This document shows positions 1 to 64,000 of a DNA stretch of 64,000 nt, in pieces. The DNA lies in NCBI GenBank assembly GCA_004764695.1, contig SMSO01000035.1, positions 2,108,001 to 2,172,000 on the forward strand, in the 5' to 3' direction. This DNA comes from Schizochytrium sp. TIO01. Its lineage: Eukaryota > Protista > Bigyra: Labyrinthulomycetes. The notes beneath the pieces are model-generated. The model was given only the letters and a program-made list of their open reading frames with translations. It ran no database searches and was not told the DNA's origin. The translations under genes were made by a program, and so were the position numbers. Positions within the stretch are counted from its first letter, which is position 1. Each line of letters begins with the position of its first letter.

Positions 1-600
1 CTGATTGAATGCGAAGATGTCCTGAACTTCACTATCATCATAGAATAGGCTGACCATTGCATATCCTTTTGAAGCTTGTATAGCTACATTTTCAATGCTT
101 TTATTTACCATTGATGTGTGCTTGATAATACTGTCCCCACAACCCTCATCTGAGCAAACACTAAGACCGTCAGGCACGACGATACCTACAAGCTCCATCA
201 CGTCTTCGATACTGCGATTAGCCACTAATGCTGCCACGTAAATTGTTGAAAGGTCCTCTCGATCCATAGTTGCCCCAAGTAAAGTTATATTGTGTTCGAG
301 AGTATCCAGCCCTAGTGCTGACTTTGAAATATTCTGTATTGGCTCCCAAATGTTTGCATTCCACTGCAAAACTTGGACAGCCTGCTCTTCGGATATGTAC
401 ACAAGTAGGTCGTCTGTCAATGTTACGAACGCAACACCAATATCTTGAGGATACGTTTCCAAGTATGAGGGATCTCCAATTGTCTCAAGGTCTTGGGCCA
501 GACATTTGATTGGCGCGCTTTGAAGGAAGATCAAACCAACGAGCACTGCAAACCACCTCCGGTACCCAGGTAATCGAAGAACACGTTCCGAGGACACCAT
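1..600 (-). CDS. 5' part of a secreted/membrane protein (runs off the window edge)
   Basis: Manual translation from the ATG at 600 is open to position 1 (200 codons): MVSSERVLRLPGYRRWFAVLVGLIFLQSAPIKCLAQDLETIGD..., with a signal-peptide-like N-terminus and N-glycosylation sequons (NIS, NIT, NRS, NKS). It is missing from the ORF track because there is no stop inside the window. Confidence 0.7.
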   Translation of the reverse strand, partial: MVSSERVLRLPGYRRWFAVLVGLIFLQSAPIKCLAQDLETIGDPSYLETYPQDIGVAFVTLTDDLLVYISEEQAVQVLQWNANIWEPIQNISKSALGLDTLEHNITLLGATMDREDLSTIYVAALVANRSIEDVMELVGIVVPDGLSVCSDEGCGDSIIKHTSMVNKSIENVAIQASKGYAMVSLFYDDSEVQDIFAFNQ

Positions 601-40857: not shown

Positions 40858-43800
40858 ATGTCGCTCCCGAATGATGCTGCGGAGGACCGCGATACGGACG
40901 ACGAAGACGTTCGCGATGAGATCATCTTTGGCGTGCAGGAAGACAGCAACGAAGCAGCCGAAGAAGACGGTGACGGAAAAGAGCGTGAAGACGAGGTTGA
41001 AGGCAACAACGACGATCGTGCAAGAAACAAACAGCAAGATCAAACTGCAGATCATAGCCAAGAACAACAAGGAGATGCTGAACAAACTCGAGAACTGCTA
41101 AAGGAGCAGGGGGAAGGACTGGACGAGGACTTCGTCTCAGCTTCAGAAAGACGAGAGACCCTGGACGGCTCATCCCAAACTGACTCCGATGAAGATGAAG
41201 AAGAAGAAGTCGTTGAAAGCGACATTGAACATGACAGTTATGAGGGAGCAGACGCAACCTTAAATGCCTCCAAATCAGCCTACGGCATGAGCTCATGGAT
41301 GCAGAGGACCTTGAGTACTGCGGTCAAGGCCCAAAGTCAACTTGGCGAGCTCCTTGCTCGACCAGGAAGACTCTATAAGGAACTGAACCAGGAAAACGTA
41401 GAGCTACGACGACGTGTAGCAGAAATTAGTGTAGCGCTCTCACACGATCGTGTGGAACTCGCTGGCGACCTCACTACAGGATCTGTAATTGCCTTAAAGG
41501 ACAAGGTCTCCGGCGCGGCTATTGGTGTGCAGAACGACAACAAACTAATGGAGATCACTTGGACTCGGGCAGTTCCACACAATAAAAACTCAGGAAACTC
41601 TGCTGAGAAAGAAGATAAACTTGACCAGGAGCTAAATTGGGAAATCATTCCTGAGGCGGCAAGCGTGGGATATTATAGGCTCACTGTGGACGATGTTGAC
41701 CACTGCTTGCGAGCAGATGTCCGCATGAAAGACCTCTTTTGGAGACTTTTGCCAGATAGCTCTGGCGATATGAATCACCATGCTGAAAACGGAAGCTCTC
41801 ATACGAATGGGACGACGGGCACTGTACCCCAGGTTTCCCCTGCGCCGTCTCCATCCGCGGCAGCAACATCATCTTCTATAGCCGAGGGTAGAAAAATTCA
41901 CGCTTCAGCATCATCGGTGAGCTTAGCGTCTGCCGCGTCGAGCGGGTCGCACGGACTCAACGGGCATGCTCGCGAGTCAATTCTTTATTTCTCACCTGAG
42001 GGCAATGAAGTAGTCACGGTATCCGATCAAGTTGCGAGCCTCGTGAAAGACCTTATGAAGCGTTCAAAGGTTTTGCAGTTTGATGGCTTTAAGAATCGTG
42101 CAGATCCTGCGAACGATGCTCAACTCATTGTAAATGCCAAGAAGCAGGGAGATCTCAACGTTCTCGTTCGTCGTGCACCCACAAAGTCCCAGGCTTTGGA
42201 AAGTGCGGAAGATCCTGATGACCCCGCATCAGAGGCAATTGAGGCCAGTTTCCCTGCTAAGCGCCTTCAGGTGTATTGTGGAGGCACTCACGCGCGAGCA
42301 ATTAACCTTGTCCTTGATGAAAAGTCTGTACTTCTACATGCTCGGGCAAATGCTGAGCGTGACGCAGTTGTGCTACTTATCCGGGAACGCCGCAAGACAT
42401 TGCGAGAGCTTCCACGCAGTTATGATTTTGAGCCAACAGAATTATTTGAGCCTCCTCGAATTGAGTCCACTTCGGTCTCAGTGTCTGGTGCAGGGTCTGT
42501 CGCTGCAACCACGGAGCATGGTCAGCAGCAACAACAATCACAAGGCCCTGCCGCGGTTGATTGTGCTTACAGTGAAGTGTGGAAATACTTGGAATATCCC
42601 GCTCTAGCACAAGCTGCTCACGATATTCAGAGCAGCAGCAAGACTTTGAGTGACTTCCCAGTAACTACTCCCGGGGCAGCTTTTTCTGCAATCGCTCGGA
42701 GATTCTCCACGCGTTCAATTCCATCAATGTTTGGCGTTGTGTCAAGCAGCAAGGTGCCTCCAGCTTCTCCGCGTCAGGACCAAGGCAGAAAAACTCGTGC
42801 GGACTCTAAATCGTCAGAGCCTAAGGAACTAACCCCGCCACCAGTCCCCCCTGAAGAGATGCCAGCTTCGTTTGATCTTTACTCAATTGGTGGCTTCGGT
42901 GAGCGCTATGATGTTGAGGTGAACATGATTGATGGTGAAGGTTTGGGCATAACCTTATCTCTTTTTGACGTTGTCCGCAAACCAAATGATGATGTCTTCC
43001 CAGAGCGCGGTGCTACATGCGTCTGTATAAGTGGTTTTTGCCCCACAGTTGTGGCTGGAGAAGAGAGCCTTGGTCAATTAGAGAAAAGCAAGAGGGTGCG
43101 CATTGGAGACGCCCTTGTGGCTATCAATGGCATTCCTGTTGAGCCCTCCGAACCTGTGCGCAAGCGCAAAGATTTGAGGACATATGAGAAATGCACGTTG
43201 CGCCGTGTCGCGGAGTTAGTAGAGCGTGAACGGTTGCATGGTCGTGAGGAATCAGAACGAATTCCTAACCCCGCTGCTCGTATGACCTTTACCTTTGCTG
43301 AGGGGCTCTCTGGACAGGCCGTCAAAATTAATTCGCATCTCAAGTTGCGCGAGGAGCTTGAGGAATATAAGACGAAACTTTACGAGGCCAACGCTCGCGC
43401 CAGTGCTTTAGTCATGCAATGTGAGCAACGTCTTGAAAAACAAGGTGCTCGGACACGAAAGCTTTGTGAGGTTGTTGATGAGGCACGGGCCGAGTCGGAA
43501 CGTGCTAATACGGAACGAACATTTGTATTGGATGAATGTATTAATCTGAAAAAACAATTACACGGGGCTGCTGAAGAAGCAAAGGTTGTTGCTGGGAAAC
43601 ACAATGAGGAGATTGATGCTCTTAAGGAGGAGATCGGCCGATTGAATCAACGGAAGGAAGATCAGGTACGGCATATTAAGCAGCTGGAGGCAAGTATGGA
43701 ATCTTTAGCCAATGAGGGCGAGGCATGGGTTAATACCATTGGCACCAAGGAGGATGCCTTGCGCGCTCTAGAAAAGGAGATGCGGGCTATGCAAATTAAA

Positions 43801-44766
43801 TATGAAAATTCACAGAGTCTCCTTGACAATGCCACAGCAGAACGTGAACGTATTCGCATGGATGTTTCAAGCCGTGATGAGCAAATCACGAAACTTAAAG
43901 AAGAGCTAGCGGCATCTCAGACGAAGCTCGAAGAGGCTAATGATGAAGCTGACAAGCTCACTGCACGAATTCGTAGCGAGGCTGACGAGGCAGCAAATGC
44001 CATCGAGCGGGCCAAGCACAGCCAAAAAACTGCGGCAGCTGAGTTGGAGACAATGCGTGGGCAACTTTCTGTTGCGCAGTCCCACGCTCGTGCTCTGAAG
44101 GAAGCCAATGCTAGTGCAGAACAACGTGCTACGGAGGCGAGCTCTGCTCGGCAAGCGGCAGAGATGGCTTTGCACGAGCAAAAGGAGCTTGTGGCTCTCG
44201 CGCATAAGCAAATTGCTCAGCTCGAAGAACAGCTTCGGAACGAGCGAACAGTACACGAACGCATGCGTCGTGACCGAACTGGCTTGCGAAGCCCTTCCGC
44301 ATCTATCTCCAACACTGAGGAGTCTGGCACTGCTCCTGCATCAGGAGATGCAGGTTTAGATGAAGATACAATCCGTCGCGAAGAGCAGCTGAAAAAGAGA
44401 AACCGTGAGCTGGAAGCTGCAAATGATTTGTTGAGGTCCCAAGTGAAGTCACTCAAATCCCGTGTGCAAGGCCTATCTGCAGAGGTTACGAAGGTAACAC
44501 AAATGGATGCAATAGTAGCTGAGAAAAATGATCTCATGGTCCAGGTCAAGCTGGAGGAGGCCAAGCGTCTGGAAGCTGAAGATGAGTTGACTGCATATAA
44601 GGGCGCTTTACTTAAGTATGCTCGTCAAGCCCAAAAGGACGAACAGGAGGGTCACGGAGAGCCGTGGACAAACCGACCCAAAATCTTTGATCATTTGTAT
44701 AAGACTTTACTGGCAGAAGAAGAGGGATCAAAGAAGATGGGCCGTGGTAAACCTTCGTATGCTTAA
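40858..44766 (+). CDS. Large coiled-coil scaffold protein with Ig-like, PH-like and PDZ-like domains
   Basis: 1302-aa ORF: acidic N-terminus; ITWTR...WEIIPEA...YYRLTVDDVDHCLRADV (Ig-like); ARANAERDAVVLLIR (PH-type C-helix); GLGITL...VRIGDALVAING (PDZ); about 450 aa of coiled coil. Confidence 0.85.
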   Translation: MSLPNDAAEDRDTDDEDVRDEIIFGVQEDSNEAAEEDGDGKEREDEVEGNNDDRARNKQQDQTADHSQEQQGDAEQTRELLKEQGEGLDEDFVSASERRETLDGSSQTDSDEDEEEEVVESDIEHDSYEGADATLNASKSAYGMSSWMQRTLSTAVKAQSQLGELLARPGRLYKELNQENVELRRRVAEISVALSHDRVELAGDLTTGSVIALKDKVSGAAIGVQNDNKLMEITWTRAVPHNKNSGNSAEKEDKLDQELNWEIIPEAASVGYYRLTVDDVDHCLRADVRMKDLFWRLLPDSSGDMNHHAENGSSHTNGTTGTVPQVSPAPSPSAAATSSSIAEGRKIHASASSVSLASAASSGSHGLNGHARESILYFSPEGNEVVTVSDQVASLVKDLMKRSKVLQFDGFKNRADPANDAQLIVNAKKQGDLNVLVRRAPTKSQALESAEDPDDPASEAIEASFPAKRLQVYCGGTHARAINLVLDEKSVLLHARANAERDAVVLLIRERRKTLRELPRSYDFEPTELFEPPRIESTSVSVSGAGSVAATTEHGQQQQQSQGPAAVDCAYSEVWKYLEYPALAQAAHDIQSSSKTLSDFPVTTPGAAFSAIARRFSTRSIPSMFGVVSSSKVPPASPRQDQGRKTRADSKSSEPKELTPPPVPPEEMPASFDLYSIGGFGERYDVEVNMIDGEGLGITLSLFDVVRKPNDDVFPERGATCVCISGFCPTVVAGEESLGQLEKSKRVRIGDALVAINGIPVEPSEPVRKRKDLRTYEKCTLRRVAELVERERLHGREESERIPNPAARMTFTFAEGLSGQAVKINSHLKLREELEEYKTKLYEANARASALVMQCEQRLEKQGARTRKLCEVVDEARAESERANTERTFVLDECINLKKQLHGAAEEAKVVAGKHNEEIDALKEEIGRLNQRKEDQVRHIKQLEASMESLANEGEAWVNTIGTKEDALRALEKEMRAMQIKYENSQSLLDNATAERERIRMDVSSRDEQITKLKEELAASQTKLEEANDEADKLTARIRSEADEAANAIERAKHSQKTAAAELETMRGQLSVAQSHARALKEANASAEQRATEASSARQAAEMALHEQKELVALAHKQIAQLEEQLRNERTVHERMRRDRTGLRSPSASISNTEESGTAPASGDAGLDEDTIRREEQLKKRNRELEAANDLLRSQVKSLKSRVQGLSAEVTKVTQMDAIVAEKNDLMVQVKLEEAKRLEAEDELTAYKGALLKYARQAQKDEQEGHGEPWTNRPKIFDHLYKTLLAEEEGSKKMGRGKPSYA

Positions 44767-49293: not shown

Positions 49294-51171
49294 ATGTCCT
49301 CAAACCGCCTCGGACCAGGGACATTCCAGATGGCGAGAGCTGCTTCTGACGTGGCTGACCCTCTCCCAGGCAACAGCTCTGGCAAGGTGAAGACTGTACC
49401 TGTGAACCTACTCAATCGCCACACGAAACGTGTGCTTGGACGGCCAGATGGCTGGGAGAAGAGCGAATTTGATCGTCTCCGCCAGCTAAACCAAGGTCAA
49501 TCCTCAAATTACAAGTCACAAAGGGATCGTAGGCAGGAACTCGAAAGAGAACCTTATGCAGGTTTTCAACCCCCTCCAGGCTCACTCCTACTCAAGACGT
49601 CGCGCAAGACGAGTTCCACTCGCAGCGGCGGCACGGCAGCAGGCAGTGTGACTGCCAGCTCGTCCAATGACGGGGAGGACGCACCGGGGCGGCGCGCCAT
49701 GACCCAACATTACCGTGCCCTTCTGCTCGGGGAGGACAATAATGATGATCTAGATCCCCAAGGGAAAGACCTTCGCGACTCTCTCGCTGGAGGGGCACTT
49801 TCTCGCTCGCAGGCAAATATGTGGGCCAAGGCCTCGCGCGATGGGCGCGCTGAGGACTTTTTGCGTCCTGCACGCAAGCAACAACCTGAAAATAAGCTTA
49901 TCAGCAAGTATAAGGCCAACATCGTCCCTCGAGGAATGAAACGCCCACCACATACATATTTCACAGACTTGGGTCCACCGCAGCAAGACCATTTATATCA
50001 GTCAGCACAAGGGCAGCTACATCAACCATATCAGCAGATTTTTCAGCAGCAACAGCAGCAACAGCAACAATATCCTCAGCACCCATTTGCAAACGGTTCA
50101 CCATCTTCACAAATGCATGATGCGCCACGTCCGCCTCGTGCTGCGGACCATACCGCTAAATACTTCCAATACACTGAAGAAGACCTGAAGTCTAGTGTGG
50201 GACCAAACCATGGCAACCCTTTCGCTGTAAAGTCTGCAAATGACCAGGCGCGGTCAAGCACCCCTGGTGATGATGTTGATGATGTACTTCCCCCTCGCTA
50301 TCATGAACAACACCCAACTTCTAAAAGCACCGCCGGGACTCGGTCTCGTCGGGTGAGCACTGCTAGTCGCAAGCGTGAAGATTCTAACACAGGGTTGACT
50401 CAGTCCGAGTTTGAGGATGAGGACGAAGATGAAGAAGACGAAGAAGAAGAGGAGGAAGAGGTAGAGGTAGAGGACGGAGAAGAGGACATTGACGAGGAAA
50501 GTGAAGGTGTCGATGAAGAAGAAGAAGATGACGAGGAATCAGAAGAAGTCACCGTGGAAGGTGAAGATGAAGATGAGGACTTTGAAGACGAGAACAGCCA
50601 AAGCAGGGACGATCCCTCTGTATCAAAGTACTTGGAGATGATTGCGCAGCTCACTGAAGAGCTTGAGCGCGCACAGGACCGAATTGCGGATCTTGAACAG
50701 CAACGCGAAGAAGAGCAAGACGAACTTGAATCGGAGCTGGAGGAACTTGACAAAGGAAATCTGGACTTGAAAGGCCAAACCGTGGCTCTTCAGCGTCAAG
50801 TATTGCATCTTACATCTGAACGTCAGGATAACCTTGAGGAAATTCAAGCCCTTCAAGACGAAAATGTGCAGCTTCGTGCGGACTGTCACAAGATGGAACA
50901 AATCGCGAAAGTTCTCCACAAGAAGGCGGCTGTTTTGCAACAGCGTCTTGGCCAAGAAGATAGTCGTCAGCTTGAGCGCGCTGCCGAGCGTCGTGCTCGC
51001 GAGCAAGCTGGAGGCAGCCCGCATCCAGTCGAGACTATGGAAGATGCAATGGATCGAATTGCTGAGCTGGAGTCGCTCAATGAGGCTCTTCGTGCAGGCT
51101 TAGCCCAAGGTATGAGTAGTCGCACCAATCCCGCATCGACCTCATCAAACAATGAGACAGGGCCCTTTTAG
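49294..51171 (+). CDS. Disordered protein with poly-Q, a long acidic tract and a C-terminal coiled coil
   Basis: 625-aa ATG ORF; E/D tract at about 50410-50590; heptad-rich C-terminus. Confidence 0.82.
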   Translation: MSSNRLGPGTFQMARAASDVADPLPGNSSGKVKTVPVNLLNRHTKRVLGRPDGWEKSEFDRLRQLNQGQSSNYKSQRDRRQELEREPYAGFQPPPGSLLLKTSRKTSSTRSGGTAAGSVTASSSNDGEDAPGRRAMTQHYRALLLGEDNNDDLDPQGKDLRDSLAGGALSRSQANMWAKASRDGRAEDFLRPARKQQPENKLISKYKANIVPRGMKRPPHTYFTDLGPPQQDHLYQSAQGQLHQPYQQIFQQQQQQQQQYPQHPFANGSPSSQMHDAPRPPRAADHTAKYFQYTEEDLKSSVGPNHGNPFAVKSANDQARSSTPGDDVDDVLPPRYHEQHPTSKSTAGTRSRRVSTASRKREDSNTGLTQSEFEDEDEDEEDEEEEEEEVEVEDGEEDIDEESEGVDEEEEDDEESEEVTVEGEDEDEDFEDENSQSRDDPSVSKYLEMIAQLTEELERAQDRIADLEQQREEEQDELESELEELDKGNLDLKGQTVALQRQVLHLTSERQDNLEEIQALQDENVQLRADCHKMEQIAKVLHKKAAVLQQRLGQEDSRQLERAAERRAREQAGGSPHPVETMEDAMDRIAELESLNEALRAGLAQGMSSRTNPASTSSNNETGPF

Positions 51172-52212: not shown

Positions 52213-53730
52213 TTATATCTGTGAATCGATACCAAGGAATCGTTGAACCTGTTGGTCCTTGAGCGCCTGGTACCGAATCTCGGGGTTAGCCTCGGGGCCT
52301 AAAACACGAACGAAAAACTCTTCCAGACCAGCCATGCGTCGCCGAAGCAAATCCTCGTAGCGACGTCGCGAGCGCGTTGCACTCATCATTCCGCCTGAAC
52401 CACGCAGGGGAATAGGTGGCACAACGCGCGTGAATATGGAGTGCCGCGTTTCGTCAGTCTCTAGAAGCTTCTCGAGAACGCGATGGAACTCAACAATTGA
52501 TGCATACCGATGCCAGACCATCCACTCTTTCAGAGAGGCTTTTGGTCCTCCAGCAGCTTCAACCTGAGGGTTGACCCTGACCAAAAGCTCAAACTCAGAA
52601 AAGGTAGTGAGGCCCTTTTTGCGTTTTCTTACTTGAGAAATACTTACAACCACATCTAGGATTTGGTCGTCTTTGAATTTCTGCAGGAGCTCAGGACTCA
52701 TGATTGAAGGCGTTGTAGTGCCTTGGCTACTTAGACGAAGGGAATGATACAACTGGATGTGACGCATGGATGAAGTTGTAGGTGTAAGGGGTGTGAGAGG
52801 TGTTGATGGAAGATCCTGTAGGCTCGACAAACTCATGGTTGAAGTTGTGCTAGTTGTAGACATGATCGAAGTAGAGCGTCCATGCGAGGTAATGGGTCCA
52901 GGTATGTTCACTTTTCGAGGCGTCACAAAGGACTGCGATCGAGCCTTGTTCGTTTCGCATGTGAGCTGAGTCTTACTTGCTGGGGTGACAGAAGCAGTAG
53001 ATGATAGCGAGGATGAACTTTCATCCTTCACTGATGCCTGACTTCTCGGGGACCAGAACATTACAAGAAAGAGAGCAACAGTGTGAAATGCACAAAGAAA
53101 TGAGCCCCAAACACGCGAAGGTACAAAGAGCATGAGCGGGATTTGTGATAAGAGCAGGTAACTTAAAAGTCTAATCTTTTGTTCGCCCCAAAACGACTGT
53201 CGAGAAGTTTTTGCTACAGTGTCCCTCCGCTTAAAGAATCTTCGCTCAACAACAGGTTCTCCTTGTTGTCTCAGTACCTGCTGCTGTGAATCAGCTGAAT
53301 TTGATTTGCTGGGTACAATAGAAAGTCTTTGCTCTAACCGGGTCCCATTACGAAACACGCGGCGCTCATCGATCACCCTTCCTCGGGGAGTTTCGTACTC
53401 CATCCGCAAAGGTGTATCCTCTGATCCCTGAACAACGCATTTAACATGGTCTTGAGTCTCGCCGTTGACATCAAGTTCAAGTCGCTTCGAGCCATTTAGA
53501 GTTGAGATGACTAGACGATCTCCATCGACATTAATGTCTTGGACATTAGCTGAGAGAAGCTCATGGCGGGATTCCTTGCTCAAAGACCCAGAAGACTGGC
53601 ATGTGGAATTATCAACAGAGTATATCTCCCACACACCCTTAAGACTGCTGACACGGCTTGGAATTCCTGAGTCTTCTTCGGCATTGCCTTGAATCTTGCT
53701 ATTGCTTCGCTTATTGATCCAGAACCGCAT
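52213..53730 (-). CDS. PX-domain protein with an N-terminal FABP/lipocalin-like barrel and a TM hairpin (may have an upstream exon)
   Basis: PX motifs FELLVRV...WMVWHRYASIVEFHRVL...PPIP...RRRMAGLEEFF...VQRFL; N-terminal LKGVWEIYSVDN...ERRFFKR; two hydrophobic helices. First ATG at 53730; frame open to 53823. Confidence 0.8.
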   Translation of the reverse strand: MRFWINKRSNSKIQGNAEEDSGIPSRVSSLKGVWEIYSVDNSTCQSSGSLSKESRHELLSANVQDINVDGDRLVISTLNGSKRLELDVNGETQDHVKCVVQGSEDTPLRMEYETPRGRVIDERRVFRNGTRLEQRLSIVPSKSNSADSQQQVLRQQGEPVVERRFFKRRDTVAKTSRQSFWGEQKIRLLSYLLLSQIPLMLFVPSRVWGSFLCAFHTVALFLVMFWSPRSQASVKDESSSSLSSTASVTPASKTQLTCETNKARSQSFVTPRKVNIPGPITSHGRSTSIMSTTSTTSTMSLSSLQDLPSTPLTPLTPTTSSMRHIQLYHSLRLSSQGTTTPSIMSPELLQKFKDDQILDVVVSISQVRKRKKGLTTFSEFELLVRVNPQVEAAGGPKASLKEWMVWHRYASIVEFHRVLEKLLETDETRHSIFTRVVPPIPLRGSGGMMSATRSRRRYEDLLRRRMAGLEEFFVRVLGPEANPEIRYQALKDQQVQRFLGIDSQI

Positions 53731-54861
53731 GTTGCTTTGTAGTAGGACCGGGTCTCCTCCCTCGTCTCCAAGGCTTTCTGTTTGCTGGCCCTTCCGCTTT
53801 ACACAACAAAAGCAGCCGTGCAAGTGAGGTAACTAATTTGTGCTACTACCAAGTAGGTAGGTACTGATAAGAGTTACGCTACTCGCCCCCTTTTGCCTTT
53901 TTACTAACAGGAGGTTTCCCCTAGTGCGCAGTAGGTAGCTCCTATTGCCACGGCTATCCCTGCTTTTGTCTCAACAAATCAGTCTACTGCAACCAACTCA
54001 GAAAGGACGAAGGACGCAACTGATTAGCTAGCTAGCTACCCAACGCCAGCGCCAGGCCCCAGAAATTGGACTCCAAGCACCGACCTTTGGTGAAACGGGT
54101 CGAGGGGTGGATTGACAGAATTGCGATTCGTTCGATTGCTTGATCCGCTGATTCACGAGTTGATTTCGTGCTTCAGTGCCAATTGAGCGTGTGAGTGAAT
54201 GAATGAATCAATGAACCAATGAACTAACAAAGTCAATGGATCAAGAAATGAGATCGAATGAATCAATGAATGACAGGCCCGGCCAGGTTCAGCCTCGCGT
54301 CTGAGTCAGAGGTATACTCGACTTTGTGGTGCGCGCTAGCAAGCAGCTGGCACGCTCTCCAGAACGAGTTCCTGAACCAGACCCTCGAAAGAAACCGCAG
54401 AGGTCTACCTCGGCACGAGGTAGAGATGGAGAGATATAGAGCTAGCTATTCAGTCAGCTCGCTAGAAAAACGTCGGAGGCGGTAACCGCAATGCACACCA
54501 AACAAACCTCACCCTGGCCCCTTCTGCTCTCGCTCAGAGGAGGCCAAACACCCGTCAACAGCGATTAGATATTGTTGGTTCGATTGAGGTGTATTTTTGA
54601 GAATTGAGATGTAATGTAATGCAAGCAATGCAGTGCAAACACAAACAAACAAACAAACAAACAAACAAATCGATGTATGCACTTCCAAGCGATGAGTTCC
54701 TTTGCGGAATTCAACGCTTTCTTTCTGCAGGAAGCCAATCAGACAATCTCGCACAATGAACGTACAAAGCTGGCAGTCGCTCCCGAGTATTTTGTTGCGG
54801 CAGGCTACTCGCTCGCTCGATCGGTCGGTCGGTGGGATTCGCGAGAATGGACTGAGATCGA

Positions 54862-54970
54862 AGAAAGAAGAAGAGAAGAAAGAAGAAAGAAGAGAGAAGA
54901 AAGAGGAAAGAAAAAAGAAAGAAAAAAGAAAGAAAAGTGAAAGAAAGAAAGAAAGAAAGAAAGAAAAGAA
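54862..54970. repeat. GA-rich / (GAAA)n low-complexity tract
   Basis: Nearly pure purine run. Confidence 0.85.
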
Positions 54971-57133
54971 ATCGATGAACGAGAATCGATTATCGATCGA
55001 CGACTCAGCCAGCTCCTTCCCACGAGGAGATGAGCAGCTCAGGCCGCACCACGCGCAAGCGGCGGCTCCCCGCCGACTTTACCACCACGCTTGGCCTTCG
55101 CGAGCGCCCACGTCACCGCCCTGCGCTCCCAGCTTCTTCCGCCAGAGTGGTCGATCGGCTGGCCTTTGTATAATGTCCCGCTCTCCTCGTGCGCGGAGCG
55201 ACAAGGGTGCTTGCTGCCAGCCTTCGACGCTGGAGGAGCTGCCGTGCTAAGCTCGAGGGGACCCTGTCCTCCCCGGTAGCCTCGCAGGGGCTTTACCGCA
55301 GACGTGGCTGCCTCCTCGTGCCACGCGGGTGTCTCCACGCCGCCACGAGCGCGATTCGATTTTAAAACTCTTCCTTATACTCTCAAACTAATTGAACAAT
55401 CGCTATTGAATTGGAACCCCGCGGGAGGGCTTGCCGGCGAAACTCAGGGGGGTAGAGTATGTGGGTCTCGCAGCCTCACTGCAGCTGTCCATAGTCCATT
55501 TGAGCGTGGAGCACCAGCAAAAGTTTCTCTCTGCCCCTTTCGGAAAAAATAAACTTGCCAAGTGTCTTTGGGTTTCAGTTTCTCCGAGCACCTCATGAGG
55601 GACCAATAATTTTATTTTCTTTAACAAATTGCAGTACCATCATGATCATAGTTGATGAAGATGGGTACTGATTGTTGCTTGCTTGCTTGCTTGCTTGTGG
55701 CATTCAGGATATAAGCAAGGTGGCCAATCTGCTTTGTGAAGCAAGACGCGGTGGTTTCAAGGAGGCTGAGATCCTGGCGTATGAAAGCGTACCTATATCA
55801 GGCAATTGCTCGTCCAATAATAATAATCAATGTAGGTACTTCGGTAACAACTTTTGGAAAAGAAGGTAAGTTTAAAGTTGGAAACTCCAAACATTGGGTT
55901 TGGAAAACCATGATAGGTTAAAGAAAAAAAGTTATCATGACCTAATCTTGGACATTCCAGGCTAGAAAAAGGGAGCTAAACGCAAGGATAAAAGTGGGGA
56001 CAAGACCACGGGCTTTAATTAGCTCCGACCTCCAGCAATGTCAGCTCTGACATAACATAACTCAAGTACCTCCTGCTATTTGGCTGCCAAAAACGAGAAT
56101 GGCCATGACCAGCTCGAAAACCAGCTGCTGGAACTTTTAATTCCAAAGTGATAGGAGCTTGGGCTAGACAAAATGCTATTAGTAGCAGTCCCGATTTGGG
56201 GGAGCTCTTAATATTTACTGAAAATGGCGTAGACCAACCAACTGTTGTTAGGACGTCTGATACATATATCAGCAGAATGTGATCAAAGTTGATGGTATTG
56301 TCATAAAACAAACGCCAAACAAGGTTTCAATATGTCTGCTAATTCTAGTTCCCTACGTAACGGGATTTGATGCGGGTATGGCTAAACCCTAACTACAAAT
56401 CTAAAATCAACAGCGGCTTAAGACATTCGAGGGGGTGCACCTCATGATCTAAGGCTATGGAGCTTGACTCTGAGATATCAGTATCAAAAGCATGTCTGAA
56501 TAAAGTGTGTTTTGATGATCACTAAATTGATATAAAAATTGCAGATAGCCTTGTCAAGATTGGCTCTTCAAGAGAGAGACGGAGATAGGTGCTATAAATA
56601 TGGAGAAAAAAGAATCCGCAAACAGGCTGTTTGAAACGGCTGTCCAAAGAACGATTTATTTTATTCTCTAGAGCCACATATGAAATTTAGTATAACAGTA
56701 CCTAGGCTGTTACGTTTCTTTAGCTGTGTTGCCAGGAAGAGCTCGTATAGCTGAAAAACAAACATGGAATAGCTAATGGTATCCTTGGCAAGCAGTCTAG
56801 CAAACTCAGCATGAAGGAACTCACATTTTGCTTGTCAGAAATCTGTTAAGCAGGCAAAGGCAGAATAAGTTGAACAGTAAATTCCATGCGCTCGATAGTT
56901 CATGTGGAAGGGAAAGCCCACCGGGAAATAAATGCTCTCGCACGCAAGCTAACGACCACTACAGGGCGAAAAATGAGTGAAAGTGAAGAGGATATTGTCT
57001 ACGACAAACCAAGAAACTGGGATAGAAGTATATTAATTACATTAGCTTGAAATAAAGCATGCAATCTAATAAGCAGAACCTGATAGGAAAGCTTAATATC
57101 TTGCACTCCTAGGATTTTGCAAGTAAAGGTAGT

Positions 57134-60100
57134 TTATTTAAGCTTTGCGTAAGCTCTTTCACAGATACCTAAAAACGGAAACCTTCTATGTGCTGCTTGA
57201 ACTGCCTCGCAAGCACCTACCCTTATAAGCTGGCTTGCCACTTCGCGGTTACATGCCATAACATAAATTGCCTCGCATGCTTGTTTCTGCACATTCCCAT
57301 TCATTCGATGTGCTTGCATGGAAACAACGATCTCTGCACCTGCGTTCAATACTAGTGCTAGATTGATGTTGTTGTTCTCGTTCTCAGCAAGATTACGCAA
57401 TGCCCCGCATGCATGTAGTTGCACAGCCACATTCATCCGATGAGTATGCATTGCAACCACTATATATCCGCCTGCATTTATATCTCGCCCAAGTATCGCA
57501 CTGTTGACTTGACTTGCTGAAAGATTTAATAGCGCTTCGCATGCGTTTCTCTGCACGTTATCATCCATCTCATGTTCTTGCATTGCAGCCACAACCTGCA
57601 AACCTACATCCGAATTTTGCCCAAGAATCACGCTATTGCGTTCATTCGTAGCAAGGTTCGATAGCGCCTTGCACGCGTTTTCTTGCAAGTACGCGTTCGC
57701 TGGATGTTCGCTCATGGTCGCCGTAATCTCTGCACCCAGATTTAGAGTTTGACCTAATATGACTTTGTTCCGGTCGCTTTCAGTAAGATACTGCAATATT
57801 GCACATATTTCTTCTTGCGTATCTTCATCCGTTCGATGAATACGCATGGTATTTATAATTGCCAGACACAAATTGAGGTCTTGTCCAAGTACATGCTTGT
57901 TGCGGTCACCAGAAGCCAAAGCTCGGAGTGCTCCGCATGCGTTGCATTGAATGTCGAGATTCAGATCATGTTCGCGCATGGTAGCCTCAATTTCTGCTAG
58001 TAAATTCAAATCTTGCCCAAGAAGTTCTTTGTTACGATCGCTCAGAGAAAGGCTGCGGAGCGCTCCACATGCCAGCTCTTGTAGTTCTTCATTCATCCGA
58101 AATGTACGCATAGCTATCATAATTTCTCTCCCTGCATTTTGATTTTGTAGGAGAATATCGGCGTTACGGGTGTTCATAGTGCCCAGAGTCCAAAGTGTTC
58201 TACATGCTTCTGTCTGCACATTAACATTTTCTCGATGCGCGCGCATCGCTGCCATAATTTCTGCTCCTACGTTGAGATCTTGCACCAGTATCTTGCAATT
58301 CGTATCGTCGTTATATCCAAGTACACACAATGCGCCAACCGCCGATTCTTGCACATCAGCATGTGACCTATGTTCGCGCATCGCTGCCAATATTTCTGCT
58401 CCCGCCACACTGAGATCTTCTCTCAAAGTCTCCCTGTTGCGAGAGCTAAGTGCAAGATTATGGAACACACGGCATGCTTCTGTCTGCACATTAGCATTTG
58501 ATCGATGATCACGCATGGCGGTCAAAATGTCTACATGTACGTTTAAGGTTTGCTCGAGAACCTCTCTGTTGTCGTTACTTAGTTGAGCAAGAATATACAA
58601 CGCCCTAAATGCTTGTTCTTGCACCTCTGCAACTATACGATGTGCTCGGATAGCCTCCTGAATAACTGAGCCCGAATCGACATCTTTTAAGAGTATCTCC
58701 GAGTTGTAGAAATTGTTAGAAAGGTTTTGTAATGCTTTACATGCCCAAAGTTGCACATTGGCATCCGATTGGTGTGCGCTCATAGCAGCGGCAATTTCTG
58801 CACCCACACTCATCTCCTCTACAAGAATCTCACAATTTCGATCATTTCCAGAAACAAGATTATACAATGCTCTACATGCCTCTTCCTGAACCTTTGCATT
58901 TGTCTGATGTGTCCCCATAGCCGTCATAATCTCAGCACCAGCATTCGAATCTTGAATAAGAATGTCTCTGTTAGAGTTATTGGATGCAAGAGAACATAAT
59001 AGTATACAAGCCTGTTCCTGGACTTGAGCGTTAGATGGAAAAGCGCGCATGACAGCTACAATCTCAGAGCCCAAGTTTAGATCTTGTACGAGGGCAATCC
59101 GATTACCCTCGTGGACCGTCACAAGGCTCCTTAGACTTGCAAAAACTGATAATTGGACTTCAGCATTGCTGGCTTGTTCTTGCAAAATACAAATGAGGTC
59201 AGATCCCCAAGAGAAATTTGTCATTGCGGCCTCAATATACTCATAGGCAGTTTCTCCAGATAAAGCAAAATGTAACGTCCATAAGGCTTCAGATATCAAT
59301 TTTGGGTCGTCTTTTTGTTCTCCTAAAATTCGTTGTAAATGAACAAGAATCCCTCGTGTCCGCACCTCACTCCGCAGCTGATCTTGACCCTCCCCATTCT
59401 TAAATTCGCCTTCCAAGATATTGCGTAAAGCCCCTAACGTGTTTAGCAAATTGGCTCGTTCATTTGGATTGACCAAGTCTCGAACAAAACCTTGGACTCT
59501 TTCAATTTCTATAGTTGCTTTGGTAGATCGACGACGATCTAGTTTTGAAAACGTGCCAGCAATTCCGCGTATAAGACGACTCGACCGTCGTTTAACACCA
59601 CGTGCTTCAAATTTTTTCAAAGCTTCCTCCGCGCTCGGTCGCTCTCCAGGGTTTTGACTCCAGCATAATTCGATGACGCGAGTCACCCATGATTTGGCCG
59701 ATGCTTCCTCATAAATAGCAGGACGCATGCCTGCTAAAACCATGCTTTCAATCTCCCCTGGTAGTAAGCTTAAGTCATATGGCACTTTTTCATGATATAT
59801 TTCCCAAGACATCATTCCTAACGAATATATATCTGCCTTAGTAGTCCATTGTACAGGTGCTTGGAGCACTTCAGGGGCCATGTACCTGGATGAATGAGGT
59901 AGTGCAATGGTGTAGGTTTGACTTGTGTTTGGGCGTGTTCTAGCAGCCAACCCAAAATTTGCAAGTTTGGCAAGCCCCAAATCGTGTCTAAGCATCACAT
60001 TCGCAGGCTGAAGATTACTATGGACCACATTTTGATCATGAAGATAACAGAGCCCCTTTGTGATACTACACAGAATTCTCTCTTTGTCGTCAAGACTTAG

Positions 60101-61048
60101 AGTAGTATGTGTGTCACTCTGTTTCATTTGTGACAGTACATGAGCAAGAGACAAATCGCACTGATCCATGACCAAATGAAATTGGTTTTGGATTATGCAG
60201 GTCCCGAGTAGGCATATTATATTATTGTGGAACAATCCACGACAACATTCGGCTTCGTTGATCAAAGCCTTTCTCTCAGCAAATTCAGACGATGCAGTTA
60301 CTTTACGATATTTTTTTGTAGCAATTGGTATACTGACACCGTTATCATCACGAAGGATACCGAAGAGGACTGTTCCAAAACTTCCATTGTCACGAGTGGG
60401 ATCTGGGGATTCTATTGAAACCGTTCCTTGCTCCAAGGTGGCGATTTCGGACTCATGAGTCCCTTGCAGCATAGAGGTAAACTCCTGAAGCGCCTGCTGC
60501 TCTGTCTCTGTCCCGGCTTTTCCTTCGACAATATCTGCGAGGTCCATATCAGATTTATCCTTTATCATCAACAATAATGTGTCCGCTTGATCGTAGCCTT
60601 GATCTTGGTAGTGCGTTATCATTTCTTCAAGGTGAAGCTGGTCTTCTTCGGCGTCGTTGAGGTCCATTTCTTCGATAGATATGGGAGGCACCGGGAACTC
60701 AAAGCATACATGATGGACATGAGTCAAAGTCTGTAAGCGATGCTCCACATACAAGAGCGCTTGGTATGCTCGCTTGGCGTATATGAGCTGCAGAATCTTA
60801 GCGGAGCTATTATCCGTAATTGGCTCAAAAACTCCACGAAGGAGAGAGACAGCGTTGCGTAGATTGGCCTCGACTATGAAAAAATTGATATCCTCGTTCT
60901 GCGAGTACTCAAAAAACCCTGCAAGTTTGTTGAAGGCATTATGGAGGTGTGCAGCTCTTTGGCGGCAGGTGTTTGTATGCTCGAGAAGTGCGGCACCCTG
61001 ACATGCAAGTTTTTGCGAATAAAAGAAGTTTGCAGGTGGGTTGGGCAT
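57134..61048 (-). CDS. N-terminal helical bundle + TKL-type pseudokinase + ARM-repeat protein (MLKL-like architecture)
   Basis: Kinase fold GSFGTV, IATKK, HSNLQPANV (HRD lost), ANFG (DFG lost), YMAPE, ADIYSLG, RPSA; about 15 repeats of AEIxxAMxxHxxxxxVQxxACxALxxL; amphipathic N-terminal 120 aa. First ATG at 61048. Confidence 0.9.
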   Translation of the reverse strand: MPNPPANFFYSQKLACQGAALLEHTNTCRQRAAHLHNAFNKLAGFFEYSQNEDINFFIVEANLRNAVSLLRGVFEPITDNSSAKILQLIYAKRAYQALLYVEHRLQTLTHVHHVCFEFPVPPISIEEMDLNDAEEDQLHLEEMITHYQDQGYDQADTLLLMIKDKSDMDLADIVEGKAGTETEQQALQEFTSMLQGTHESEIATLEQGTVSIESPDPTRDNGSFGTVLFGILRDDNGVSIPIATKKYRKVTASSEFAERKALINEAECCRGLFHNNIICLLGTCIIQNQFHLVMDQCDLSLAHVLSQMKQSDTHTTLSLDDKERILCSITKGLCYLHDQNVVHSNLQPANVMLRHDLGLAKLANFGLAARTRPNTSQTYTIALPHSSRYMAPEVLQAPVQWTTKADIYSLGMMSWEIYHEKVPYDLSLLPGEIESMVLAGMRPAIYEEASAKSWVTRVIELCWSQNPGERPSAEEALKKFEARGVKRRSSRLIRGIAGTFSKLDRRRSTKATIEIERVQGFVRDLVNPNERANLLNTLGALRNILEGEFKNGEGQDQLRSEVRTRGILVHLQRILGEQKDDPKLISEALWTLHFALSGETAYEYIEAAMTNFSWGSDLICILQEQASNAEVQLSVFASLRSLVTVHEGNRIALVQDLNLGSEIVAVMRAFPSNAQVQEQACILLCSLASNNSNRDILIQDSNAGAEIMTAMGTHQTNAKVQEEACRALYNLVSGNDRNCEILVEEMSVGAEIAAAMSAHQSDANVQLWACKALQNLSNNFYNSEILLKDVDSGSVIQEAIRAHRIVAEVQEQAFRALYILAQLSNDNREVLEQTLNVHVDILTAMRDHRSNANVQTEACRVFHNLALSSRNRETLREDLSVAGAEILAAMREHRSHADVQESAVGALCVLGYNDDTNCKILVQDLNVGAEIMAAMRAHRENVNVQTEACRTLWTLGTMNTRNADILLQNQNAGREIMIAMRTFRMNEELQELACGALRSLSLSDRNKELLGQDLNLLAEIEATMREHDLNLDIQCNACGALRALASGDRNKHVLGQDLNLCLAIINTMRIHRTDEDTQEEICAILQYLTESDRNKVILGQTLNLGAEITATMSEHPANAYLQENACKALSNLATNERNSVILGQNSDVGLQVVAAMQEHEMDDNVQRNACEALLNLSASQVNSAILGRDINAGGYIVVAMHTHRMNVAVQLHACGALRNLAENENNNINLALVLNAGAEIVVSMQAHRMNGNVQKQACEAIYVMACNREVASQLIRVGACEAVQAAHRRFPFLGICERAYAKLK

Positions 61049-62752
61049 ATTCGAGTAGAGCACCGCTGATTATTGGTCTGCCGGCGTGTTTGCCCCGTTG
61101 CTGTAGATTGGCAGTTAAGGATGATAATAATAATATTAACTGACATATGATTTGCACGTGACTATGCCTTTTTACCCAATACGTAGAATGTCTCAGATGT
61201 TAAGCTGCTTGTAAGAGTCCAGGACTGACCTAGTAGCCCGTCATCCACGCTCTGCAACTACGTTCTGATTCTCCAGGCTCTCAGTTTTAGAAAAGTCTGT
61301 ACGTAGCCCTTTCCTTAATATTGTTTCAACAAAATAACAAATTAAAAAAAAAACGTTGGATATCTAGACAGTGATGATGACACTGGGATTGCGTTCGCCA
61401 TTGAAGGAGAAACTGAAGCACACGCCGTAAGGAGCCCTGAATCGGATTATAGGCCTTTCGCTTCCAGACGGTTGCAGCCCAGCAAGTTGCAAAATAACTT
61501 CCAAACCTACGGATCGCGGGAGAACTATGACGCACTCTTTCCAAAAGTTGGGACGGCCTAGCATTTTTAGTAACCATAGGTAGGTAGGGCACCTATATGT
61601 AGCATGATGGCACTCGTGTACCAGGATGATGAGGAAGCAAAGCTCGATTGGTATAGAGCCCACAGGCCGTTGAGAGTTAGACCCTATTTTCTATTACACG
61701 ATCACGTTAAGGAACCTTATTCAGCAAACCGAGTTCTGCAATTCGTGTCCTTAGTATGGAGAAACGATGAGGCATCTTTCATTTCAATCAAGGGTTTTAA
61801 GTTGTTTAATCGCGAGGGACGTATTCTACGCGCGTCATTTTATAGGTCACACCGCGCGAGTTAGCTATAATCCCACCATGTAGCCAAATACCGCTACACA
61901 AACTGGCTTGAAAATTTGTTCGACACATTCACGCATGCTCGCTCGGTAGTTACAAATGCTCCACTCACAGGGAGGCTAGAAGAATGCAGCTACGCTTGTT
62001 TAGAGCAAGGCTCGCTAACACCTCATTTTGATTTGATTGCAATTCAAAGGTCCTGGAATCTCTGCGCAAGACTCAGACGATTTTGCCTATAACCACACAA
62101 TTGTAAAATCATTTGATGTAAAGATTGAATTGTGTTCTCGTATGACCGGGGTCATATTGACATATTGAATTGTCATGAGGTCATCTTGCTGCGATGGCTT
62201 GCAACTTGAGAGCACAACATCATTCTCGTTCCTTTTTACGTAATCTACTCGCTAGTAAGAAGGAAAAAGATAAGCATTATTCATTTATTCAACTATTCAA
62301 CTATTCAACTAATTAGATTTGTCTTACCATGATTCATGCTCTTATTAATGGATACATTCGTATCTTCACAAGCTTGTGTAAAATATAAGCAGTTCCCCAA
62401 TGGGTTTGCAATATGTCTTTTAGTGGACAGAGAGGGTTTAGACTAACCTGTTTGAAGCACCAGCTTTGGTTAATTAAAAAATCAACATAATTAGAATCAT
62501 ATCATTGAAATACTTGTGGTTCTTCTATGTTACCTAGTTGCCTGAGTTGCATTCATTTGATTCCTTGATCAAACGACGGCTACTAAACTTCAGAGAACAG
62601 TTTACTCCCCGGTCAGATGATTTTCTTGAACTAAACTTTCTCTGTTGGCGGTGACTATACTTTTATATTATCAATACCGAGGGCTTACTCAAAAAGACTT
62701 AGTGTAGCTATGTTCTTTTCATTCAACATCTTCCATACATGGCAGTTCTTGT

Positions 62753-62782
<30 letters not shown>
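62753..62782. repeat. (CAG)n trinucleotide repeat
   Basis: About 9-10 CAG units. Confidence 0.9.
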
Positions 62783-62783
<1 letters not shown>

Positions 62784-64000
62784 GACAATAAAAAGGCTTA
62801 ATTATTTACTGAGGTTAATTTCATAATATCACCGTTTACTATACTAAAATCAATACCAAGCGAGGCATTCCAATCAACTAGAGCTGCTGGGTGGATCATG
62901 AGTACTTGAAGGAGAGACGAAAGGTGAAGAAAGGTTTCGTATAGTTAAACTTTTAAAACAATATGAAGATTTAGGAGTGTACCGACTTTTGAAGAAATGA
63001 ACTCCAAGGAGGGTTATTTGATTTACATTTAGTCGATTTAGACAAATATATTCTGTGTATAACAAATGGTAAAAGACTACGTAAAGTCCATCTCCTCAAC
63101 TATTGTTTGGGAATCATCACACATTAAATTGAACGCTAAGGTATTTGAACCTTCAATTTCCATCACTTGTTTTGTCGCTTACATACATAGTTGGGCGCAC
63201 AGTTCTTGTCGTCAATTCTACAACCTAATCTTTGAATTCTAGCAAGGGTATATCAAAGGACCCTGGACATGTCTTACCAACATAATTCTTCGATTGATGA
63301 TCTCAAAAACTTGCCTGTACTACTTTCTCCAACTTTATATGTATATTGGTTAGAAATCACAGTTGAATTTCCCCAATTTGGAGGGTAAGAATCAACAGGA
63401 AAGTTTTTTATACCGGTTGATGCTGTTGAGACTCTCAGAGATCTTGATTTTGGCAACCAATTGAATTTTTTCGAAGACTCTTGCTCGTTTAATGAGCAAA
63501 GAGTATTGTTCAATCTACATTTTAGCCATAATATACTTATGCATCAGGTGCTTGATCTTCCTCAAGACAGATTGGATGGTACCCCTTCTTGATAAGGTTG
63601 TTAGTTATAAATAATCCTAGTTATCGTATACTTGATTCTAGATGAAGATGTGATTTGAACAATCATTTACTTCAAATATTTCAATTGTAAAACTATGACT
63701 AGATTCGTGGAGTATGGAAGGTTTTTGTTCTGCAAAGATCGACCGTCCTTTTCAGACTTCTGTTTCGAATTGGTACTGGCTATATTATGTCTACCAAGTT
63801 TAACGTAGGTTTGTACAATCAAGTGGTGGTGGTTAGCACTTAACCCAGGAAATAATATCATATTTGACTCTCAATATATCCGCATAGTATCAAGTTCACG
63901 TCTCTGTGAAAACTACTAACAAGGCTGACATTGTCGAAATTTGATGACATGCTAAACTACTCTGTTTTGATGAAGGAGATATCCAAATGGAAAACGGCCT

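Follow-up and report, generated by a model that had tools for sequence, protein, structure and literature searches.

The 64,000-nucleotide stretch analysed here (the window; Schizochytrium sp. TIO01, contig SMSO01000035.1, positions 2,108,001 to 2,172,000) carries on its minus strand, at 57134-61048, a gene with one open reading frame (ORF) of 1304 amino acids, from the ATG at 61046-61048 to the stop at 57134-57136. As judged from its sequence, the product looks like a candidate for an undescribed single-chain design that combines a sensor with an executioner: an N-terminal helical bundle resembling that of MLKL is followed by an acidic brace, by a kinase domain that has lost its catalytic residues, and by an array of armadillo (ARM) repeats (Table 1). 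An earlier note had proposed such an MLKL-like executioner fused to an ARM-repeat sensor and knew of no description of the architecture; in the literature, likewise, no paper was found on a bundle-kinase-ARM protein, and nothing was found tying MLKL to thraustochytrids or other stramenopiles. The modules themselves and the order of bundle, brace and kinase are known; what is new is the fusion to ARM repeats and the lineage in which it occurs.

The N-terminal domain and its resemblance to MLKL

The N-terminal region was modelled with AlphaFold2 from an alignment of 10 paralogues. The resulting model (pLDDT 81, pTM 0.76) contains four bundle helices, at residues 8-21, 29-47, 56-74 and 81-111, in agreement with the amphipathic helical domain of about 120 residues that the earlier note had read from the rhythm of the sequence. 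When the model was compared with 48,161 PDB chains by VIA-align, the N-terminal domain (NTD) of human MLKL (6ux8_A) ranked first (Z 9.1, rmsd 3.2, 127/152 residues). Residues 5..142 of the model lie on 1..152 of this chain, and thus brace helix 1 of MLKL falls within the alignment; with mouse MLKL (4btf), residues 6..166 lie on 2..170. The best 50 of the 48,161 chains contain seven MLKL, coiled-coil (CC) or HeLo entries, since mouse MLKL (Z 8.1), the CC domain of Rx (8.1), the RPW8-like CC-R domain of NRG1.1 (7.6), AtMLKL3 (6.4, with 178 residues aligned), the HeLo domain of HET-S (6.2) and ZAR1 (5.7) are also found there. In a second listing, seven MLKL NTD entries have Z scores of 6.9-8.4 over 124-141 aligned residues. 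The comparison by Foldseek that had been suggested earlier points in the same direction, as its low-rmsd matches in the PDB are to MLKL only (6zvo, 6ux8, 6zz1 and 4btf, at a probability of 0.93-0.96 but with E values of 0.3-2).

Two methods that use no structure indicate the same superfamily. Among 24,736 Pfam families, MLKL_N (PF22215, gathering score 27 bits) is the most recurrent match over the N-domains of the 10 paralogues, in every case below threshold. Three of these paralogues match it colinearly (E 0.011-0.14), the best being paralogue L031 (E 0.011), which covers profile positions 3-141 of 142. In the language-model space of the ESM Atlas, the same paralogue scores 0.95 to an MLKL_N-bearing cluster whose commonest phylum is Oomycota and 0.90 to a cluster named 'Mixed lineage kinase domain-containing protein'; clusters of MCAfunc, DUF7792 and RPW8 come next, and 10/10 of its best named matches belong to one family or clan. 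For the 1304-residue protein itself the nearest clusters, MCAfunc/DUF7792 and PUB10_N at 0.75-0.77, are a lead at most. MCAfunc is among the InterPro labels that identify the four-helix bundle of plant MLKLs (bioRxiv 10.64898/2026.08.07.743466).

Several results weigh against an MLKL relationship, and no single line of homology is significant, the Foldseek E values included. De novo designed helical bundles score level with MLKL (Z 8.0-8.7), though over about 100 aligned residues, and the structure-search tool itself warns that Z values below about 13 are common for helical bundles. The MLKL_N scores, 12-16 bits against the cut-off of 27, come from paralogues only; the 1304-residue protein gives no MLKL_N match in a Pfam scan taken to an E value of 10, and neither do relatives from Hondaea in a relaxed Pfam scan. 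Furthermore, a profile of the N-domain finds only chance-level matches among PDB sequences, with no MLKL, and a HMMER search of 1.84 billion representative proteins with the same profile returns thraustochytrid relatives only. The domain might then be a generic up-down bundle, unrelated to MLKL, which precedes a lineage-specific pseudokinase of the tyrosine kinase-like (TKL) group and its ARM repeats. This explanation, which overlaps with the scaffold considered below, seems unlikely: MLKL aligns over 124-141 residues that include a fifth (brace) helix, MLKL, CC and HeLo entries recur among the best 50 chains, Pfam and the language model agree on the superfamily, and the protein has bundle, brace and kinase in the order found in MLKL. 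Genome scans with the MLKL_N and MCAfunc hidden Markov models (HMMs) gave no match, but the controls were likewise silent, which makes these scans uninformative. A word-indexed search with the N-domain among proteins of 717-2282 residues returned the query alone.

The MLKL reading of the N-domain is therefore one in which several weak supports are concordant and none is decisive alone. That the fold belongs to the MLKL/HeLo/CC class is highly probable, and homology is likely as well, with somewhat less assurance. The earlier claim of an MLKL-like executioner holds for the architecture, to which the first rank of the MLKL NTD in the structure search and, more weakly, the sub-threshold MLKL_N matches and the language-model neighbours lend support; its functional half stands as a candidate.

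The acidic brace

In the AlphaFold2 model the segment that follows the bundle forms helices at residues 125-149, 155-164, 170-174 and 181-203. Consequently, what the earlier note called an acidic, brace-like linker is predicted to be helical rather than disordered, and it is acidic indeed, with a net charge of -20 over residues 121-211 and of -10 over residues 121-150. The first of its helices (125-149) aligns with brace helix 1 of MLKL and contains two residues, D132 and D136, that are invariant in the paralogue alignment; on the side of the bundle, helix 2 begins with a conserved basic C-R-x-R motif. The killer domain of mouse MLKL is restrained by an 'electrostatic zipper' that joins R30 of helix 2 to D139 of brace helix 1, and the D139V substitution makes the protein constitutively lethal (bioRxiv 10.1101/628370). 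By analogy, the pairing of an acidic brace with a basic start of helix 2 is suggestive of a similar restraint in the protein studied here.

A dead kinase in a gene that is maintained

The kinase domain is matched by the Pfam Pkinase and PK_Tyr_Ser-Thr families over residues 221-478, with E values of about 1e-37. As the earlier note had stated, the beta3 Lys is kept while HRD has become HSN and DFG has become NFG; the paralogue alignment and the translation agree on each of these points. In addition, the Lys of the catalytic loop is replaced by Gln, and the Asn of that loop and the APE motif are retained. With no catalytic base and no Mg-binding Asp, the kinase is, by its motifs, catalytically dead: the HRD Asp, the DFG Asp and the Gly-rich loop expected of an active kinase are lacking despite a Pfam E value of 8e-37. 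In a comparison with PDB sequences, the domain matches EGFR first (E 4.5e-25), followed by the TKL kinases RIPK1, LRRK2, TAK1 and RIPK2, the RIPK1 and LRRK2 matches having E values of 1e-23 to 1e-25.

A conserved basic linker (residues 491-600), for which Pfam has no matching family, connects the kinase to the ARM array. Elsewhere in the protein a Pfam scan (E up to 0.1) found no NB-ARC, NACHT, Roc-COR, TIR or SAM domain. Membership of the NLRs (nucleotide-binding leucine-rich-repeat proteins) or STAND proteins was rejected on the lack of an NB-ARC or NACHT NTPase, and membership of the ROCO/LRRK proteins was rejected in the same way, as Roc and COR are absent and only kinase and ARM families are recognised.

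A kinase with lost motifs could simply belong to a copy, duplicated from an active kinase gene and now relaxed or decaying, that has no function of its own. Among ten aligned full-length paralogues this gene alone has lost the Asp of HRD, its terminal branch in a kinase tree is 0.70 compared with 0.03-0.2 for its sisters, and one low-depth contig has a 1-base deletion at 61010. However, the frame of 1304 codons has remained open although dS to every paralogue exceeds 1.5 (1.6-2.5, saturated), the ratio of nonsynonymous to synonymous substitution rates (dN/dS) between this gene and its paralogues is about 0.2 overall, and the differences among strains in four other sequencing runs (10 synonymous, 7 non-synonymous) give a pN/pS of 0.20. 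Furthermore, HSN and NFG are kept in a 99.4% identical copy from another assembly, the kinase keeps every non-catalytic structural invariant, and transcription is probable. The intact ORF, the low pN/pS and the shared HSN/NFG argue that the gene is not decaying; it is under purifying selection. The decaying pseudogene was thus rejected, and decay in any form is very improbable. The earlier note had set out that relatives might keep HRD and DFG and that this copy might then be simply decaying. Three paralogues (L029, L018 and L032) do keep both motifs, so that the family is not uniformly one of pseudokinases, but this copy is intact.

A thraustochytrid family

The genome (64 Mb, 37 contigs) contains 28 matches to the N-domain and, at E < 1e-30, 19 loci with the kinase domain; the count of paralogues called for in the earlier note therefore gives a family of about 19 loci. 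Contig C30 carries many of these in tandem clusters, at 176-245 kb and 738-757 kb, and some are split or contain stops. Members range from about 780 to 3031 residues and from 4 to 28 ARM repeats. Of four further ORFs examined with Pfam, one had no match and three proved to be ARM-bearing members of the family, a kinase being recognised in two of the three. Canonical motifs (GxGxFG, VAIK, HRDLKPxN and DFG) are present in L029, L018 and L032; HGD/DFG is found in L028, L020 and L021, GFG in L017, L022 and L031, and HGD/NFG in L019. A mixture of canonical and degenerate motifs is seen in the Hondaea relatives as well. The kinase tree places the gene at 57134-61048 in a clade with the contig C30 cluster (support 99/97); within the family this gene is both old and divergent.

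The HMMER search with the N-domain profile yielded 11 matches, all from thraustochytrids. Five are near-identical copies of the Schizochytrium sp. TIO01 genes, one (P0009, from Logan) pairs on the tree with paralogue L034 at branch lengths of 0 and 0.007, and five are proteins of Hondaea fermentalgiana, all with kinase and ARM repeats, which are annotated only as 'protein kinase, putative'. Among the 1.84 billion representatives, then, the family appears to be specific to thraustochytrids and is seen outside the source genome only in Hondaea.

On contig C30, the tandem clusters L016/L028 at 176-195 kb and L021/L030 at 738-757 kb include near-identical duplicates (99% amino acid identity, dS 0.009). 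In some copies there the N-domain is separated from the kinase-ARM piece and others have a TAA inside the kinase, which is a birth-and-death pattern. On contig C24, at 4.428-4.442 Mb, the locus L033/L024 is a giant member with an open frame of 3031 residues, in which a divergent N-domain (26% identity) and a kinase with HSD and NFG precede an ARM array of great length.

The ARM array and its diversification

An HMM of the repeat finds 15 units of 44-45 residues each, from about residue 604 to 1304, as expected from the 15 or so tandem 44-residue ARM repeats noticed at the outset. Pfam recognises the array as ARM_LRRK2 (PF23744; E 1.1e-32; score 113.6 bits, cut-off 26.2) and as Arm (PF00514; E 2.2e-12).

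In the clade that joins paralogues of contigs C30 and C31, the array has evolved differently from the rest of the protein. Bundle, brace and kinase have dN/dS values of 0.07-0.28, compared with 0.34-0.96 in the ARM array; the exceptions are pairs with the N-terminally truncated L025 or L021, in which the ratio rises to 0.56-0.94 in the short segments of the brace and to 0.34 in the kinase. In addition, dS is often lower in the ARM array than in the other domains, a result that suggests exchange between arrays. Entropy within the 44-residue unit is highest at positions 2, 27, 30, 31, 34, 37, 38 and 41, and the last six of these are spaced like one face of helix 3. To avoid circularity, the eight most variable positions (13, 14, 27, 31, 34, 37, 38 and 41) were picked from the gene at 57134-61048 and L020 alone. 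At these positions six other pairs of paralogues have dN/dS values of 1.5-2.8, compared with 0.37-0.61 elsewhere. Thus, the selection on ARM surfaces that the earlier note had asked about is found in the paralogues, with dN/dS above 1 at hypervariable positions that lie mostly in one helix. These ratios are support rather than proof, because the pairs share history and alignments of repeats can slip.

A 112-residue ORF (58170-58508, plus strand) runs antisense to the ARM array, and other loci of the family show antisense ORFs of 400-660 residues. Such ORFs most likely follow from the periodicity of the repeats and are not genes.

A model and its alternatives

These findings have led to a model in which sensor, switch and effector reside in one chain, and to which we would give about an even chance. 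In this model, the groove lined by helix 3 of the ARM solenoid would bind a ligand, either non-self or a modified self protein, and the pseudokinase together with the brace would provide a conformational switch, which at rest would hold the bundle, as in MLKL, by electrostatic contacts of the acidic brace with helix 2 at its basic start. Once freed, the bundle would oligomerise on a membrane and disturb it, leading to cell death or an ion flux. By this reasoning the protein may have an immune role.

Other observations fit this model poorly and have to be set beside those already given for the N-domain. MLKL is not among the best 60 PDB sequence matches of the kinase, and an AlphaFold2 model of residues 1-500 (pLDDT 54, pTM 0.33) is too poor to show how bundle and kinase pack. 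The signal of positive selection stems from paralogues, the gene at 57134-61048 being a singleton with a long kinase branch; its four strain variants in the ARM region all fall outside the variable positions. The neighbouring genes in the window provide no immune context. Lastly, plant proteins that combine MCAfunc with ARM repeats or a U-box are E3 ligases or ARO proteins and are not known killers (PMC8049495).

The plant precedent also favours another explanation, namely that the protein is a non-lethal scaffold. Here a dead paralogue would tether or regulate active members of the family, or another pathway, with the ARM repeats as a platform for binding proteins; the bundle would be a module for dimerisation, membrane tethering or regulation and not a pore. 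The coexistence of active-looking and dead kinases, both in this genome and in Hondaea, suits kinase/pseudokinase partnerships, and the sequence matches to the LRRK2 ARM family and to the kinases of RIPK1, LRRK2 and TAK1 are consistent with this idea. The structures that come closest, however, are executioner bundles, those of MLKL and of NLRs of the CC and CC-R types, and tandem clusters with birth and death and an ARM dN/dS above 1 typically mark recognition receptors rather than housekeeping scaffolds. A scaffold is a real possibility, but one that we hold only tentatively, and the same applies to a bundle that serves as a tether or dimerisation module.

The one-chain model can be carried a step further. 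Thraustochytrids might have a form of innate immunity or allorecognition that dispenses with NLRs, in which a single polypeptide senses a ligand through a diversifying ARM solenoid, switches through a kinase or pseudokinase, and kills through an MLKL-type bundle. This broader proposal is speculative and must be considered rather doubtful. Under it, the gene at 57134-61048 would be a fixed kinase-dead member that acts alone or, by analogy with MLKL and its partner RIPK3, as a substrate or partner of active paralogues; that assignment is equally conjectural. If the proposal is true, necroptosis-like execution would reach the stramenopile protists.

A protist family in which a kinase or pseudokinase couples an MLKL-like bundle and brace directly to an ARM array that diversifies would constitute a new receptor design and, for thraustochytrids, would give a first point of entry into regulated cell death or immunity. 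Thraustochytrids are genetically tractable, and the hypothesis is directly testable, given a gene free of introns, a predicted executioner of only about 120-150 residues, and natural variants with active and dead kinases.

Comparison with known systems

Effectors of the MLKL type, in which a bundle is joined to a kinase domain, are established in animals and plants; MLKL is the effector of necroptosis in vertebrates, and the plant proteins include AtMLKL1-3 and Pm13. The 1304-residue protein shares with them the order of a four-helix bundle at the N terminus, a helical brace and a TKL-group kinase or pseudokinase. Its bundle and first brace helix superpose best on human and mouse MLKL, catalytic residues are absent from both proteins, and in both an acidic brace stands opposite a basic helix 2, as in the zipper of mouse MLKL. 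It differs in the 15 ARM repeats fused C-terminally to the kinase, in a sequence similarity to MLKL_N that is below threshold, and in belonging to a family of which some members have an active-looking kinase. Moreover, its kinase is not detectably nearer to that of MLKL than to those of RIPK1, LRRK2 or TAK1.

Receptors that combine a bundle with repeats are established among plant and fungal NLRs. The N-domain very probably belongs to the same fold class as the bundles of CC and CC-R NLRs and of fungal HeLo/HELL proteins (Rx CC, NRG1.1, HET-S and ZAR1), and the candidate design follows the same logic, an executioner bundle combined with a variable repeat sensor. Unlike the NLRs, however, the protein has no NB-ARC or NACHT domain, a (pseudo)kinase occupying the place of the nucleotide switch, and the putative sensor consists of ARM repeats rather than leucine-rich repeats (LRR), WD40 or TPR.

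The nearest neighbours by language model are plant MCAfunc/DUF7792 proteins (PUB13, PUB45 and ARO3) and monocot MCAfunc-kinase proteins, with sequence-level matches that are all below threshold. These proteins join a related N-terminal helical domain to ARM repeats or to a kinase (PMC8049495). They carry ARM repeats, with or without a U-box, or a kinase, but never both as found here, and they are families of streptophytes that act in ubiquitination or polarity. With LRRK2 and the RIPKs the protein has in common the ARM_LRRK2 match (E 1e-32) and the RIPK1 and LRRK2 kinase matches, but it lacks Roc-COR, ankyrin, LRR and WD40 domains and its kinase is dead; in addition, its ARM array is C-terminal and not N-terminal as in LRRK2, and an N-terminal bundle is present. 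SARM1, finally, resembles it in uniting ARM repeats and a cell-death effector (here a predicted one) in one chain; the effector of SARM1 is a TIR NADase and not a helical bundle, and the protein described here has no SAM domains.

Gene structure and transcript

The ORF as listed mechanically begins at a GTG that lies 15 nt 5' of the ATG. All aligned paralogues begin at the same Met-Pro, and the ATG at 61046-61048 is therefore taken as the start. Three runs, probably of RNA, supply contigs that are colinear with the gene, in pieces and with no joints, and one of these contigs ends at 61063. This is what a single-exon transcript with a short leader would give, and it bears out the earlier statement that the whole protein is encoded in one exon. 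The gene is probably transcribed, a conclusion that goes no further because the RNA nature of these runs is a guess made by the tool, not taken from a record, and the data are contigs. The stretch is present in 20 runs, which come from 13 studies and bear nine coded organism labels.

Two strain differences lie near the start of the gene. In one contig of run X17 (depth 5.6), one base of an A5 run at 61010, in codons 12-13, is missing; if real, this deletion shifts the frame at the gene start in that strain, but it may be a homopolymer error at low depth. In addition, a DNA-like contig of run X6 has 36 additional bases at 61117, about 70 nt upstream of the ATG, a polymorphism between strains in the promoter region.

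Table 1. Features of the gene at 57134-61048 in window coordinates, with the kinase motifs compared with the paralogue consensus.
Feature	Coordinates	Strand	Evidence
Coding sequence, complete, single-exon, 1304 codons plus stop	57134..61048	-	ORF list, translation, conserved Met-Pro, colinear contigs
N-terminal four-helix bundle, MLKL_N-like, residues 1-120	60689..61048	-	AlphaFold2, VIA-align, Foldseek
Acidic brace-like helical region, residues 121-211	60416..60688	-	AlphaFold2, charge, alignment with MLKL brace helix 1
TKL-type pseudokinase, residues 212-490	59579..60415	-	Pfam Pkinase / PK_Tyr_Ser-Thr, E ~1e-37; PDB sequence matches
Gly-rich loop: DNGSFGTV (consensus GEGSFGQV)			
beta3 strand: IATK, Lys245 present (consensus VAIK)			
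beta3 lysine K245, kept	60314..60316	-	invariant alignment column, translation
Catalytic loop: HSNLQPAN (consensus HRDLKPAN)			
HSN replacing HRD, residues 343-345	60014..60022	-	paralogue alignment, translation
Mg-binding motif: NFG (consensus DFG)			
NFG replacing DFG, residues 364-366	59951..59959	-	paralogue alignment, translation
APE motif: APE (consensus APE)			
Basic helical linker, conserved, residues 491-600, with RRSSRxIRG directly after the kinase	59249..59578	-	paralogue alignment
Armadillo array, 15 repeats of 44-45 residues, residues 601-1304	57137..59248	-	Pfam ARM_LRRK2/Arm, motif spacing, repeat HMM

Other features of the window

Two long ORFs on the plus strand, at 40858-44766 (1302 residues) and 49294-51171 (625 residues), match no Pfam family at E values up to 0.001 and may be lineage-specific orphan genes. 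On the minus strand, at 52213-53823, lies an ORF of 536 residues in which the one domain recognised is a C-terminal PX (phosphoinositide-binding) domain (E 3e-6). The frame of 182 residues at 54702-55250 (plus strand) contains a long low-complexity run rich in Lys and Glu (EEKKEERREKKEERKKKEKRKK...) and may be a simple repeat, not a gene. Lastly, the GC content is 0.36 at 62001-64000, compared with 0.42-0.53 in the remaining window.

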